This document shows positions 50,701 to 56,700 of a DNA stretch of 64,000 bases, piece after piece. The DNA comes from Camelus dromedarius. Taxonomy: Eukaryota. Every line of letters begins with the position of its first letter. Positions within the stretch are counted from its first letter, which is position 1. The stretch lies in NCBI RefSeq assembly GCF_036321535.1, contig NC_087462.1:2728001-2792000 (forward strand), read 5' to 3'. Position numbers and translations under genes: made by a program. Below the pieces are notes generated by a model. The model saw nothing but the letters and a program-made list of their open reading frames with translations, did not search any database and was not told the DNA's origin.

Positions 50701-53700
50701 CTTTCCTGGATGAGGCAAGTGAAGTCCAAAGCAGGTAAGTTTCTGGGCTGATCTCATAGGTGGTAAATGCGGGGGTATGGAGGGCGGGGTGGGGGTGTGG
50801 TGCCCTGGATTCAAATTCAGATTTGTCAGACTGCAGAGCTCCACTGGCGGATGACAGAATGAGTGAATGAGTGATGAGTGAGTGAGTGCGTGAGAGTCCC
50901 AGCGGCAGCGGGACCAGGGCCGGAGTCACCTGAGACCCCCTCAGGCCATCTCAGAGGAGGCGGAGACGGATGCAGGCGGGTCCATGGAGAGCCTGGGAGC
51001 CTGGCCCCCTTTGCCTCAGCCTCCCGGTGGCAAAAAGGTCAGGTCGGGCCAGGGCGGGCCCCTCCTCCAGAGTCCAGCCCCCAACCCCCCACCCCCACCC
51101 TCCCCGCCGCCCCCCCCCCCGCCGCCCCACACTCCTCCCTAGTCGGAGGGGGGCTGCAGGCGGGGCGCGCGGGGGAGGGGCGGCGCCGGGCTTGGCAGGA
51201 CCGCGCGGCCCGGCGGCTGAGCTCCAGCATCACGGGCCCCTCCCTCCGGCCCCTCTGGTCGCCTCTGGGCGGGTCACCTCCGGGAGCCCGGCCACCCGGC
51301 GCCCTGGATGCCATGAAGCAGCTGTGCCTGTGCGCCGCCTCCTTCGCGGTAGGGCCGGGGGAGGGGGCGCGGGCGCGGGAACGCGAGCGGGCGGGCGCGG
51401 GCCCTTCCCTCCCCTCCTCGCCCCACTCCTTCCGGCCCCCTCCACCCCCTAGACCTTCCAAGGATGATCAGGGAGGAAGGGTCGGGGGCAGAGATTGGGG
51501 GATGGATGGGACATTTGGGGAGACAATTTGGGGACAGATGGGGACATTCCAGAGAATTCAGGGGGCATTTAGAGGGACAGTTTGGGGGAACAGTTTTGGA
51601 TGGGATCATTTGGGGGACAATTTGGACGCTACACTGGGGACCTTTTTTGGGAAAAGATATTGGCATTTGGAGAACAATTTCAGAGGACATTTGAAAGATT
51701 TTGGGGGGAGGACACTTTGCAGACAGATGATGGGGTCGTTGGGGGGATGACTTTGGAGAACATCGGGAATTTGGGGAAGATATTTTGGAATGCATTTCAG
51801 CCTTGGGACATTTTGGGGGGCAATTTTGGCATCTCAGGGCAGTTGAAGAAGGCTAGATGGCAGAGGAAGGTGCTGAGGGACATTTAACGGGAGCTTTTAA
51901 GGGTTCCTATGGGAAGATTTCGAAGTGTGGTTCAGAAAGACATGGTGAGGTGATGCTGGAAAGGGGCCTTTCACTAAGGGATGGGCTGGGCCTCGGTTTA
52001 GGGGACAACTGTTTGGAAAGATTCTGGGAGCTGATCTGGGGATGATTTAATGGTACAGTGCTGGCAGTGGGGGTGGGATGACAGCCGGAGCCGTGGACCT
52101 GGGGGCAGATGCTGGGGGGACACTCCCTCAGGCCCCCACCCAGGACCACTTCCCCCGGCAGCTGCGGCTCAGCCCCACTGACCTTGGCTCCTGCCCGCCC
52201 TGCGGCCCCTGCCCCATCCCAAAGCCTGCAGCCAGAGGCAGGCGCCAGGCAAGTGCCCGGGGCGGGCGGCAAGAGCCCAGGGCCCTGCTGAGGGAGCAGG
52301 GATGGGCAGTGGCCACCAGCCCCACGCTCCCCTGGGTGTGCCCCACAGAGCCAGGACTGGGGCAAAAGTGACGAGCGGCTGCTGCAGGCTGTGGAGAACA
52401 GTGATGCCACACGAGTGGCTGCCCTCATTGTCCGCAAGGGGCTGGTGCCCACGAAGCTGGATCCCGAGGGCAAGTCCGCGTGAGTGCCCATGACCTGGGG
52501 GTGATGGCTGAGGAGTTGCCACCCTGCAGCTGACCCCTGACCTCTGGTCTGTAGATTCCACCTGGCGGCCATGAGAGGTGCAGCCAGCTGTCTAGAGGTG
52601 ATGCTGGCACACGGCGCCAATGTCATGAGCACGGATGGGGCAGGTACCACCCGCCGGGCCCTGGGGGAGGGAGAAGGAACTCAGACCAGGTGCCCAGCCT
52701 GAGGGTCCAACTGGGCCATGCTTCATGGCCCCAGTGTCCTGCTGAAAAAGAGGGGTTCCCTTCAGTGCCCCCAGGGAGGCTCAGAGGCATGTCAGGCTGC
52801 GGTGCCCTGATGGAGGACCATGGCTGGCACCAAACAGAGTGGGTCAGCTTGCGGACTGGGAGATCTGGGGCGCGGTTAGTAGTCGAGTCAGGGGAAGTAG
52901 CTGGACCAGAGGAGTATCTGAGCTTGAGGGGCATTTTGGAGGGGCATGAGAACAAGCACAGTTTGGGGGGAGTGTCTGAGGTCCATGAAGTAGCTGGGGT
53001 TTCGAGACAGAGCTGGAATCCAGGTGTGTGACTTACCTAGGCCCTGAGGGAATAACTCAGAACTAACTCCGAGATAGAAGCCATGGCCAAAGGGAACAGA
53101 AGGGACTCAGGGAGTAGCTAGGCGTGGGGCATAGGCATGTCTGGAGTTTCGGGGCATGGGTGCAGCGGCCAGGATTTATGGAGTACTGGGGATTTGTGGA
53201 GCGTCAGAGTCAGGGACTTGGCTGGCACGTGGAATGGTGTGTGGATAGCAGGAACACTGAACAGCTGTGGGTGCTGAGGGCTGTGGCTGGCGCTGATGTC
53301 ACTGAGTTTACCGAGTAAGTTGGGCGCGGGGACGAGCAGAGGCTGCAGTGCTTGGGGAGTGGGTGGGTGTGGAGCGGATCTGGGACACAGACTGTGTGGG
53401 GCTTGGAGGGTCTCTGGCTCCAGGGAGTAGTGCAGTTTTGAGAAGTACCTGGGCTGGGGACTTGCTAGATGGAGTTGTCACAAATAGTTGACACAGGTAG
53501 GGGAGGGGCAGCCGGACGCTCCTTGAGTACCTGGAGCTCCAGCCATCCTCGCTCCCTTTCAGGTTACAATGCCCTCCACCTGGCCGCCAAGTACGGGCAC
53601 CCACAGTGCTTGAAGCAACTGCTACAGGTCATTTCCTTTTCTGTCTCAGATATTCCCCCAACCCGGATACTCCTGGAACCCCAGATACTCCCTTGCCCTG

Positions 53701-56700
53701 ACTAGTCCTGAGTTCCAGCAAGTCTCTGAGCCCCCAGTTCCCCCTGAATCCTAGGTATTCCTTGGTCTCTTTGACTCCAGAGTCCTGGCTACTTCTTGGA
53801 CAGCCAGATACTCCCAGAGTGTCCAGCTACTTCCCACACCCAGGATATAACCCCAGTGCCGACATTTCCTGAGCCCCCAGCTTCTCCCCAAACCTAGACA
53901 CTCTCTTAGCCGCAGCCACTCTCAGCTCTCATCTATTCTCCAAACCCCCAGCTGCACCTGGGCTCCCAGCTAGTCCTTCTTCCTCATCAATTTTCAAAAA
54001 GCAAAGAAAATCACTTGGGAGTTGGTTAGACGGGGTCCGCAGAGCAGGTGGGTGGGAGGGAAGGAAAGGGAGAGGCAAGGAGCCTGAAATGTAGCAGAGC
54101 CCAAGGAGGGGCAATTCCGAGAGGAATTAGGCAGCGAAGAGGGATGGCTCTACCTCAAATGACCTGCCCCCCCAGGCATCCTGCGCGGTGGATACTGTGG
54201 ACAGCAGTGGGTGGACGGCCCTTCATCATGCAGGTGGGTGCAGCCCAGCCTCACTTTGGCCACTGTGGCCCGGACGGTGCTAGGTTTGGGGATTATTCTA
54301 CCGGGGGCTCTAGGGACTTGTCTCGAATATTCTGCCTCCTTCTTCCTCCTTCCTCATGGAGCCCCTACAGTGTGCCAGGCACTGGGTTCCACATTATCCT
54401 CAGTGACCCTTTGAGCCGTGGACATTGACCATTGGACAGACAAGGTTATTGAGGCTCACCAACAAGAAAGTGGGGAGGATCCAGGCCATCTGACCCCTAC
54501 TGTAGGTCAGGCCTGGGTGAGGACGATCAGAGGGTGACCAGACTGAAATCTCCTTCAAGCAACTCATGGGGCATCGCAGGAAGGCCAGTGGTCCGGGCAG
54601 CCTTCATAAACATCAAATCCAAACTCCTTTCCCGAAGGAGGGGAGGGAACTACCCTCTTGAGCCAGAGCCCAGCCCAGCTGATCGTCTGTCCACCATGCT
54701 CATGACCCTCAGGAACGTCTTTCACTGATGACTCAAGAAACGTCTATTCTCTTGGGAGCAAAGAATAAATTTGCTTTGGAGTTTTATTCGCTGTAGAAAA
54801 ATTCCCTGTAGTTGGAGTACACTGCCACCTAGTGGCAGTGAGGACCTTGATCTGACTAAAAAAGCTTGGTTTTTTTCTTTCCTTTAATTAAAAAAAAAAA
54901 TTTTTAACAGAGGTACTGAGGATTGAACCAAGGACCTCATGCATGCTAAGCACGCACTCCACCACTGAGCTACACCCTCCCCCCTTGTTTTTGTTTTTTG
55001 ATTGAAGTATAATTGATTTACAATGCTTGTTTTTTCTTTTTCATTCAATGCGTAATTTTTGAGTACCTGCTATTTGCTAGGTTCTGTTCTAAGCACTGTG
55101 ATTTCAGCAGCAAACAAAATCCCATAGCCCCCTGGGCACACAGCAGGTAATCATATAGAGTTTGATTTTCCACCGACATCTTGCACAAAGCCTTCCCTTC
55201 CCTCTTTGAGGCTCTGGACATACACACCTTCTCCTACTTTCTTAACCACCAACTTCTTCCAGGCTCCTTCCCACCTCAGAGTCCTTGCCCATGCAGCGAC
55301 CTCTGCCCTCCCCCTTTCACCATCAAAACTCAACTCAAAACCCAAGAAGCCTGCCCAACCTCAGCTGAGGTCTGATCTCTCTCATAAACATTAAACCCTC
55401 TTTGTATGAGGGTTTGGTACACAGTTGGTATGCGATAAATGCTGGTTGAGTCAATAGGAGGGTAAATACAGGAAAATCAGTCAAAAGTTCCACCTTAAGA
55501 GGGACCCTCGGTGGAGTGTGGCAAGAGATTGGGACTTGGAGTTAGCAGACCTGTGTCCTCATCCTGGCTCTGTCTCTGACCTCAGTGGGTGACTTTGGGC
55601 CTGACTGGGCCTCCGTTTCCTCTGTAAAATAGGAGTCATGCCTTTGTTATTTATCTTCTGGGGGAGGCGGGAATTTCTCATAAAATAAAGGGTAAGAATC
55701 ACACTCAGGCAGAAGGCTCCCAGAAAGTGTCGAAGCCTTGCCCTGCCTACCCTCCTTCTCTCTTTTCCCAGTGGCTGGTGGCTGCATCTCCTGCTCAGAA
55801 ATGCTCTGCTCTTTCAAAGCACATCTGAATCCCCGAGATCAGGTGAGGCTCTAGGATCTTTCTGGAAAAGAGACTGCATTTGAGGTATGCTGCCACCAAG
55901 TGGCGGCATCCTGGGCACCTCTTGAAAAGTGTGAAGATTTGGAGTGAAGCTGGCAGGCAGTCGTGGGCTTCCCTGCCTCCTGGAGTCAGCCTCTCATGCT
56001 GTGTCTCGTCCCTCACCCCCTCCCCAGTTGGGTACAACACCCCTCATCATAGCAGCTCAGATGTGTCACACAGATCTGTGCCGCCTCCTCCTGCAGCAAG
56101 GGGCTGCTGCGAATGACCAGGACCTGCAGGGCAGGTGAGCATCTCCTCTCTCAGCCAGTCCAGTGTGTGCTGTATGACCTTGGGCAAGTCTCTTAACCTC
56201 TCTGGGTGTGGGACCTGGTTGGCCTCCTCCCTGATCCAGCCTGCGTGTTGAGAAGGAGGTGGAGGTTTGAAAATGTCCTCACCCCCTCAGTAGCCCCCTC
56301 TTCTGGTAGGACGGCCCTGATGCTGGCCTGTGAGGCGGCCAGCCCCGAAACAGTGGAGGTGCTGCTGCAGGGCGGGGCCCAGCCGGGCGTCACCGATGCG
56401 CTGGGCCAGGACGCTACTCACTACGGTGCCCTGGCAGGGGACAAGCTCATCCTGCACCTCCTGCAAGAGGCAGCCCAGCGCCCATCACCAGCCAGCGGTA
56501 TGCAAACCCCAACTCAGAACAATTTTGAGCACCCTCCTCCATCTTCTAGGTAGTTTCTTGTCACCCCTCTCTCTCCCTACTGGGGACAGTTTCAAGGTAT
56601 CCCTACTTGCATTATAGGAGGTTCCATGGCTCCCCTTATTACTACTCAGCACAGTTTCAAGGAGCCCCAGAGCTTTCAGAATAGCCTAGGGGTCAACTCT

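Follow-up and report, generated by a model that had tools for sequence, protein, structure and literature searches.

Opposed arrays of a decayed 18-nt repeat flank a frame-shifting ankyrin exon of ANKRD24 in placental mammals

The two introns that flank a 65-nt ankyrin exon of the gene ANKRD24 in the dromedary, Camelus dromedarius, are complementary to each other at many positions. We analysed them within a 64,000-nt stretch of genomic DNA (assembly GCF_036321535.1, contig NC_087462.1, positions 2,728,001 to 2,792,000 of the forward strand; hereafter, the window). Both complementary arms are decayed arrays of a single 18-nt tandem unit, placed in opposite orientation on the two sides of the exon, and the 6 complementary pairs which an earlier note on this DNA had described as nested, collinear inverted repeats are many-to-many matches among the copies of this one degenerate unit. 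Judging from the comparison of orthologous loci, we consider it somewhat better than an even bet (probability of roughly 0.55) that the arrays are an inverted pair of ancient minisatellites in slow decay, a relic rather than a selected, register-specific duplex switch.

Complementary introns around a frame-shifting exon

The gene was recognized by a protein search, in which the big downstream open reading frame (ORF) matched ANKRD24 of many mammals, with those of camels being the nearest. Reading of the region 52600-54200 places the 65-nt exon at 53563-53627, with the borders cag/G and CAG/gtcatt, where it extends the ankyrin frame between the exon ending at 52644 and the exon starting at 54176. 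Because the exon is 65 nt long and lies in the ankyrin-repeat frame, its skipping shifts the frame, as had been proposed. In agreement with the earlier description, the introns are skewed in opposite senses, G-rich upstream (52645-53562; G 0.38, C 0.20) and C-rich downstream (53628-54175; C 0.32, G 0.22), and all 6 of the pairs reported between them (numbered 1 to 6 here) are present, with 15/15, 10/10, 13/14, 7/8, 8/8, and 11/13 complementary positions, respectively. Among the sequencing runs matching the stretch are RNA contig runs, which contain about half of its words, and raw-read RNA runs from the same species. The main features of the region, with positions counted from the first letter of the window, are the following:

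52555-52644, plus strand: upstream ANKRD24 ankyrin exon, 90 nt, ending in phase 1 (reading frame and AG/GT borders)
52888-53540, plus strand: upstream array, about 10 recognizable decayed copies of the 18-nt unit, all on the plus strand (position weight matrix [PWM] scans)
52891-52925, plus strand: 5' arm of the strongest complementary block, comprising 2 adjacent units and including pairs 1 and 2 (local alignment and RNAduplex)
53563-53627, plus strand: 65-nt ankyrin exon, the site at which the unit orientation flips (borders read from the sequence)
53640-53985, minus strand: downstream array, about 11 recognizable copies of the 18-nt unit, all on the minus strand (PWM scans and direct-repeat families D1-D4 and D8)
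53801-53836, plus strand: 3' arm of the strongest complementary block (local alignment and RNAduplex)
54176-54233, plus strand: downstream ANKRD24 exon, 58 nt (borders from the sequence and from alignment A1 of the orthologous loci)

The complementarity was compared with that of shuffled introns, each intron being shuffled separately with its dinucleotides preserved. The longest exact complementary run between the introns is 15 nt, a length reached in 1 of 1,000 shuffles, and runs of at least 8 nt number 36, against 16.0±4.0 in the shuffles (0 of 1,000). The best collinear chain scores 73 (44±10 in shuffles; 4 of 1,000), and the best gapped local alignment, which pairs 52892-52925 with 53802-53835, scores 40 (25.3±3.1; 1 of 300). 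The matches are thus rarely equalled by composition-matched shuffles, a control that had been suggested together with the original description, and the complementarity withstands it. By contrast, the nested collinear order, presented there as a special property, is not one: a crossing (anti-nested) chain scores 76 in the camel window against 73 for the nested chain, and among 7 species the nested chain is the better one in 3 and the crossing chain in 4. The dot plot of the 2 introns is a lattice rather than a single antidiagonal.

One 18-nt unit in two inverted arrays

The unit is 18 nt long and consists of a G-strand core, GGGAGTAKCTGGG, and a spacer of about 5 nt. The downstream array, about 18 unit lengths long, reads CCCAGMTACTCCC on the sense strand, with a spacer near TGAGT. 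The motif GGAGTAKCTGG, with at most 1 mismatch, has 11 matches in the 64-kb window, where 2.9 are expected from shuffling, and 10 of the 11 fall within the 1.1 kb of 52894-53976: 4 on the plus strand before the exon and 6 on the minus strand after it. This bears out the proposal that a degenerate GGAGTAKCTG / CAGMTACTCC unit builds both arms. With a PWM of the 13-nt unit core, the upstream intron contains 10 copies on the plus strand and none on the minus strand, and the downstream intron none on the plus strand and 11 on the minus strand. The orientation of the unit flips at the exon, with the final plus-strand copy ending about 27 nt before it and the initial minus-strand copy beginning 18 nt after it. 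Being built of one unit in opposite orientations, the arrays account for the opposite G/C skew of the 2 introns.

The copies are arranged head to tail with a constant period, as is the case in minisatellites. Neighbouring unit starts are spaced by 17-19 nt in all species, and an autocorrelation peak at lag 18 is seen in most arms and species, with further peaks at lags 36 and 54 in tamandua and manatee. In the camel, the downstream array reaches an autocorrelation of 0.36 at lag 17-18 (median 0.28), and the lag-18 signal of the upstream array is weak. Tandem Repeats Finder (TRF) calls an 18-nt array of 5.2 copies in the manatee and no array at these introns in the camel window, where the copies are too decayed for it.

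Another G-rich degenerate tandem repeat is found in the first intron of the gene, just past the CpG island (51480-51850). Its unit measures about 12-14 nt and is near GGGGACAATTTG; TRF reports an array at 51574-51625, and the GC skew rises to +0.52. The sequence of this repeat is unrelated to that of the 18-nt unit.

Orthologous arrays across placental mammals

ANKRD24 loci including introns were obtained through protein matches from warthog (L001), banteng (L002), lion (L003), wild camel, Camelus ferus (L004), naked mole-rat (L005), tamandua (L006), and Amazonian manatee (L007). The comparison covers placental mammals; a further protein search, started from the koala protein, listed no other marsupial. 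The 90-nt upstream exon is 87-94% identical to that of the camel in warthog, banteng, lion, naked mole-rat, and tamandua, and 100% identical in wild camel. In every species compared, a G-rich intron precedes the 65-nt exon and a C-rich intron follows it, and the unit copies detected with the PWM are distributed as follows (plus/minus strand):

Warthog: upstream intron 21/0, downstream intron 0/12
Banteng: upstream intron 19/0, downstream intron 0/8
Lion: upstream intron 19/1, downstream intron 0/9
Naked mole-rat: upstream intron 12/0, downstream intron 0/7
Tamandua: upstream intron 21/0, downstream intron 0/11
Manatee: upstream intron 29/0, downstream intron 0/15

The rest of the scanned orthologous loci contains scattered matches to the unit only, on both strands and mostly low-scoring. 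Complementary 8-mers between the arms exceed those of shuffled controls in the 5 orthologues tested (matched by 0-4 of 200 shuffles; the manatee was outside this test). Complementarity between the arms is present in every orthologue examined, so that it also passes the orthologue comparison suggested in the earlier note. Laurasiatheria, Euarchontoglires, Xenarthra, and Afrotheria were all sampled with inverted arrays. Since the arrays occupy the orthologous site in all 4 placental superorders, they predate the placental radiation, which puts the age of the array pair at about 100 million years or more.

Of the species compared, the camel is one of those with the most decayed copies. Between the dromedary and C. 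ferus, 9 of 1,735 positions differ (52555-54290; 99.5% identity), and the introns are equal in length. None of the differences lies in pairs 1-3, and the one at 53816 falls in the internal loop that separates pair 1 from pair 2. Insertions are seen in other species. In the banteng, an insertion of about 330 nt, which is absent from the other aligned species and looked like a ruminant short interspersed element (SINE), making it a candidate for one, splits the upstream array (L002 ~3290-3660; A1 columns ~800-1150), and naked mole-rat and tamandua carry their own insertions near A1 columns 300-460. The arrays thus tolerate insertions.

The 65-nt exon has a conserved weak donor: its 5' splice site, GTCATT (53628-53633), lacks both a purine at +3 and a G at +5 and, in alignment A1, is invariant across the 6 aligned species, namely, camel, warthog, banteng, lion, naked mole-rat, and tamandua.

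The small ankyrin exons of the window are 100% identical to those of the wild-camel locus, unlike the large coiled-coil exon of the gene, rich in glutamate and alanine (60172-62055), which is only 88-91% identical to annotated camel proteins. This lower identity probably reflects isoform or annotation differences together with the intronic start of the ORF used.

Register, co-evolution, and rate of change

Whether the pairs are kept in register was assessed by counting paired positions at the orthologous columns of alignment A1. Across the orthologues, pair 1 keeps 9-12 of its 15 pairs, pair 2 keeps 7-10 of 10, and pair 3 keeps 8-13 of 14; the corresponding numbers are 0-5 of 8 for pair 4, 1-7 of 8 for pair 5, and 2-12 of 13 for pair 6.

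Arms of the same species are no more complementary to each other than arms of different species. Complementary runs occur at 7.09 per 1e5 nt² between same-species arms and at 7.50±1.63 between different-species arms, and the longest run between the arms averages 13.3 and 13.0 nt, respectively. The upstream arm of the naked mole-rat and the downstream arm of the lion share a 17-nt complementary run, longer than the camel's own 15-nt run. Given that arms from different species reach 17 nt, the perfect 15-mer of the camel is within what the shared unit yields for arms that never meet. Compensatory changes, which had been put forward as a check of the duplex, do not show co-evolution of the arms, complementarity being equal in cis and in trans and the double changes amounting to a single isolated A-T/G-C replacement.

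The rate of change points in the same direction as the register. Identity to the camel (%) was as follows for the upstream arrayed intron, the downstream arrayed intron, and introns 5-8 of ANKRD24:

Warthog: 74, 76, and 80-84
Banteng: 64, 74, and 76-80
Lion: 67, 73, and 66-76
Naked mole-rat: 52, 63, and 48-69
Tamandua: 64, 71, and 60-76

With 52-76% identity, against 48-84% for introns 5-8, the arrayed introns do not evolve more slowly. The unit cores are better conserved than the spacers upstream but not downstream, and no better than the other ANKRD24 introns. The unit profiles of the 2 arms are the same. An asymmetry between the arms as expected from G·U tolerance is absent for G→A (0.182 vs 0.178) and weak for A→G (0.076 vs 0.027). 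The results on register, cis and trans complementarity, rate, and unit profiles together fit neutral decay of an old structure, and are also compatible with selection keeping one consensus in both arms.

Predicted folding of the pre-mRNA

Folding predictions were made for naked RNA and are no evidence of how the RNA folds in the cell. For the 1,532-nt intron-exon-intron stretch, the minimum-energy fold has −641 kcal/mol and 225 pairs between the introns, in a register unlike that of the earlier note. When the arms are shuffled, the energy is −618±12 kcal/mol and the cross-intron pairs number 168±35, with 5 or 6 of 100 shuffles reaching the observed values. Shuffled arms thus nearly reproduce the fold, and most of the effect is due to the confrontation of a G-rich with a C-rich composition.

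Ensemble probabilities, computed with the exon masked, predict about 214 cross-intron pairs. Pair 1 (52892-52906) has an ensemble probability of 0.39, compared to 0.60 for a rival register which joins 52987-52996 to 53824-53833; the probabilities are 0.08 for pair 2, 0.36 for pair 3, and 0 for pairs 4-6. Locally, RNAduplex assigns −51.3 kcal/mol to the block formed by 52891-52925 and 53801-53836, against −29.0 kcal/mol for the 15-mer alone. This best block comprises helices of 15, 10, and 3 bp separated by an internal loop and a bulge. A long duplex, close to perfect over several tens of bp, typifies ADAR substrates; here, the 15-bp helix is the longest perfect one, and the arrays overall pair imperfectly. 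Units within one arm share their orientation and hence do not pair with each other inside that arm.

The long-range duplex proposed in the earlier note therefore stands in part: the complementarity is real, exceeds that of shuffles, and includes a block predicted to be stable, whereas the single nested duplex gives way to competing registers in which pairs 4-6 have no share. We reject a single nested duplex on account of the crossing chains, the partial retention of register in the orthologues, and the higher probability of a rival register. Nor did co-evolution of the arms or excess conservation give any sign of selection for pairing. Measured by what defines pairs of conserved complementary regions (PCCRs), the introns have at least 10 complementary nt in a duplex predicted to be stable, but neither a conserved register nor compensatory co-evolution. 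Reverse-complementary sequence in both flanking introns, as in the settings of circular RNA formation and exon skipping, is found in the camel and in the orthologues.

Origin and possible roles of the arrays

If the arrays are a relic, they would have arisen in a single event, either a local inverted duplication of a G-rich intronic minisatellite or two opposite insertions, and would have decayed since at the ordinary intronic rate. What is left would endow the pre-mRNA with a potential for cross-exon pairing that is diffuse and spread over multiple registers. We favour the relic on account of the rate, cis/trans, and register tests. It would imply that solid and ancient complementarity between flanking introns can arise from a repeated unit and the opposite base skew which it creates, in the absence of a selected helix, and that tests of nested order, of cis versus trans complementarity, and of local intron rate can separate such relics from selected helices.

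Several observations weigh against this interpretation. The arrays adjoin both splice-site regions and change orientation at the exon, a symmetry which a neutral origin does not predict. Each species retains perfect complementary runs of 12-15 nt, and the camel block, at −51 kcal/mol, is strong by the standards for conserved intronic pairings (PMC8052449). The weak GTCATT donor is invariant. One pair is A-T in the camel, but G-C in warthog, banteng, and lion and mismatched (A/C) in naked mole-rat and tamandua. Furthermore, 2 changes in the camel lineage lengthen pair 1 from 13 to 15. However, with so many possible registers, the double change and the extension of pair 1 count as anecdotes. The A→G replacement is somewhat commoner in upstream than in downstream units, the direction expected from RNA pairing. 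Finally, purifying selection on one consensus in both arms also predicts equal complementarity in cis and in trans, so that the cis/trans comparison excludes compensatory co-evolution only. A functional reading of the arrays is kept alive by their symmetrical placement around the exon, by the strength of the local duplex, and by the weak yet invariant donor.

According to that functional reading, the complementary units are interchangeable and act as a multivalent RNA zipper, which would join the introns in any one of several registers, with the 65-nt exon looped out. The consequence would be lower inclusion of the exon (yielding a frame-shifted isoform prone to nonsense-mediated decay), back-splicing, or a substrate for ADAR, with selection acting on the unit consensus in both arms and on no single register. 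We regard this as possible, though unlikely. A more specific version, in which shifting registers would tune inclusion of the exon in placentals at large through unproductive splicing or a small circular RNA, again with selection on the unit consensus and not on one helix, appears doubtful. The complementarity, which exceeds that of shuffles both in the camel window and in each of the 5 orthologues tested, speaks for such pairing, but is no higher in cis than in trans. The distance from the arrays to either splice site is only about 13-40 nt, and their orientation flips at the exon in all 7 species, but they show no excess conservation over other ANKRD24 introns and are visibly decaying, most of all in the camel. 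Similarly, the predicted cross-intron pairs and the energy of the strongest block are as a zipper would have them, but composition alone yields nearly the entire fold energy and the larger part of the cross pairs. The weak and invariant 5' splice site is on the side of a functional pairing, as is the one double change that preserves a pair, and if selection bears on the consensus rather than on one helix, register and covariation tests would see nothing. Genome-wide, exons looped out by conserved pairings have lower inclusion, but exon loop-outs are depleted (PMC8052449). The searched literature holds nothing on pairing of ANKRD24 introns, on circular RNA from the 65-nt exon, or on its regulated skipping; the studies returned for the gene concern hearing loss and Meniere disease. 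Were the pairing used, it would be an unusual multivalent, register-free long-range splicing structure common to all placentals, and would lie in tandem repeats, a class masked from the published catalogue of conserved intronic pairings.

The arrays might instead serve as platforms for proteins. In this case, they would be repeated binding sites that help to define a small exon with a weak donor, and not partners of each other. Intronic G-runs and C-patches are bound by hnRNP H/F-type and PCBP/hnRNP K-type proteins, respectively, and the candidates would be G-triplets of the hnRNP H/F intronic enhancer type upstream and C-triplets of the PCBP/hnRNP K type downstream, or else a DNA-binding factor reading the unit in either orientation. 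The repetition of GGG ... GGG on the sense strand of the upstream intron and of CCC ... CCC on that of the downstream intron every 18 nt, as well as the conservation of the weak 5' splice site, would suit this explanation. However, 2 RNA-binding specificities do not need exact reverse complementarity of a 13-nt core, including its middle part AGTAKCT, which is not confined to G and C, and the arrays show no excess conservation. Accordingly, we hold a role as binding platforms to be quite improbable.

An origin from transposons seems more improbable still. The arms could be the terminal inverted repeats, made of subrepeats, of a foldback-type element, or 2 opposite insertions of an old interspersed repeat with an internal 18-nt array. 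Inverted arms built of short tandem subrepeats are a hallmark of foldback elements, and pairs of opposite SINE insertions around exons are common. Yet the centre between the arms is an ancient, conserved coding exon of the host, which is not something that an element can bring; neither the 64-kb window nor the remainder of the scanned orthologous loci contains a second cluster of the unit, and no termini or target-site duplication were seen. An Rfam scan of the window gave only tRNA-like SINE matches, all outside the arrays.

The tRNA-like matches number 6, are found on both strands (989-1060, 4191-4263, 12676-12746, 20955-21025, 26867-26938, and 54908-54979), and most likely correspond to tRNA-derived SINEs. 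One of them sits in the ANKRD24 intron that follows the exon starting at 54176.

The idea that any pair of a G-rich and a C-rich intron would yield such matches has a negligible probability: although shuffled arms reproduce the larger share of both the global fold energy and the cross-intron pairs, pure chance or composition is ruled out for the sequence matches, which clearly exceed those of shuffles, by the local enrichment and strand polarity of the unit and by the recurrence of the same architecture in 6 further species.

Comparison with known systems

The ANKRD24 introns resemble inverted Alu pairs and the inverted repeats around mouse Sry, examples of flanking-intron repeats that favour back-splicing or the skipping of exons, in having complementary repeats in both flanking introns, many-to-many pairing, and a predicted loop-out of the exon. 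Unlike these, the ANKRD24 arrays are built of an 18-nt tandem unit and not of interspersed elements, are orthologous across placentals rather than lineage-specific, and are far more degenerate, with the longest perfect run being 12-15 nt and the looped exon measuring just 65 nt.

Competition of alternative pairings for one partner sequence is shared with the docking-site and selector-sequence competition of Dscam1 and with ATE1 (PMC7797038). In those systems, each alternative selects a different exon and is backed by covariation and mutagenesis, whereas all registers in ANKRD24 enclose the same single exon and none is backed by covariation.

Like the conserved long-range pairings catalogued in mammals (PMC8052449; IRBIS, PMC4174434), the pairing considered here is intronic and long-range, involves at least 10 nt, has a strong predicted energy, and can be aligned on both sides across mammals. 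It differs from the PMC8052449 pairings in having no fixed register and no compensatory pattern beyond one isolated pair. The pipeline of that study masks tandem repeats, so that arrays of the ANKRD24 type would be excluded; ANKRD24 is absent from the searchable part of its supplementary text.

The likeness to foldback-type transposons is one of resemblance only, consisting in the inverted arms of short tandem units; the centre of the ANKRD24 structure is a conserved host exon, and the window and the scanned loci yielded no additional copies, termini, or target duplication. With intronic minisatellites, the arrays have in common a head-to-tail, G-rich unit of about 18 nt, whose copy number and preservation vary among species. 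What sets them apart from intronic minisatellites is that they are old and decayed rather than actively homogenized, and that ANKRD24 carries 2 opposite arrays of one unit, arranged symmetrically about an exon.

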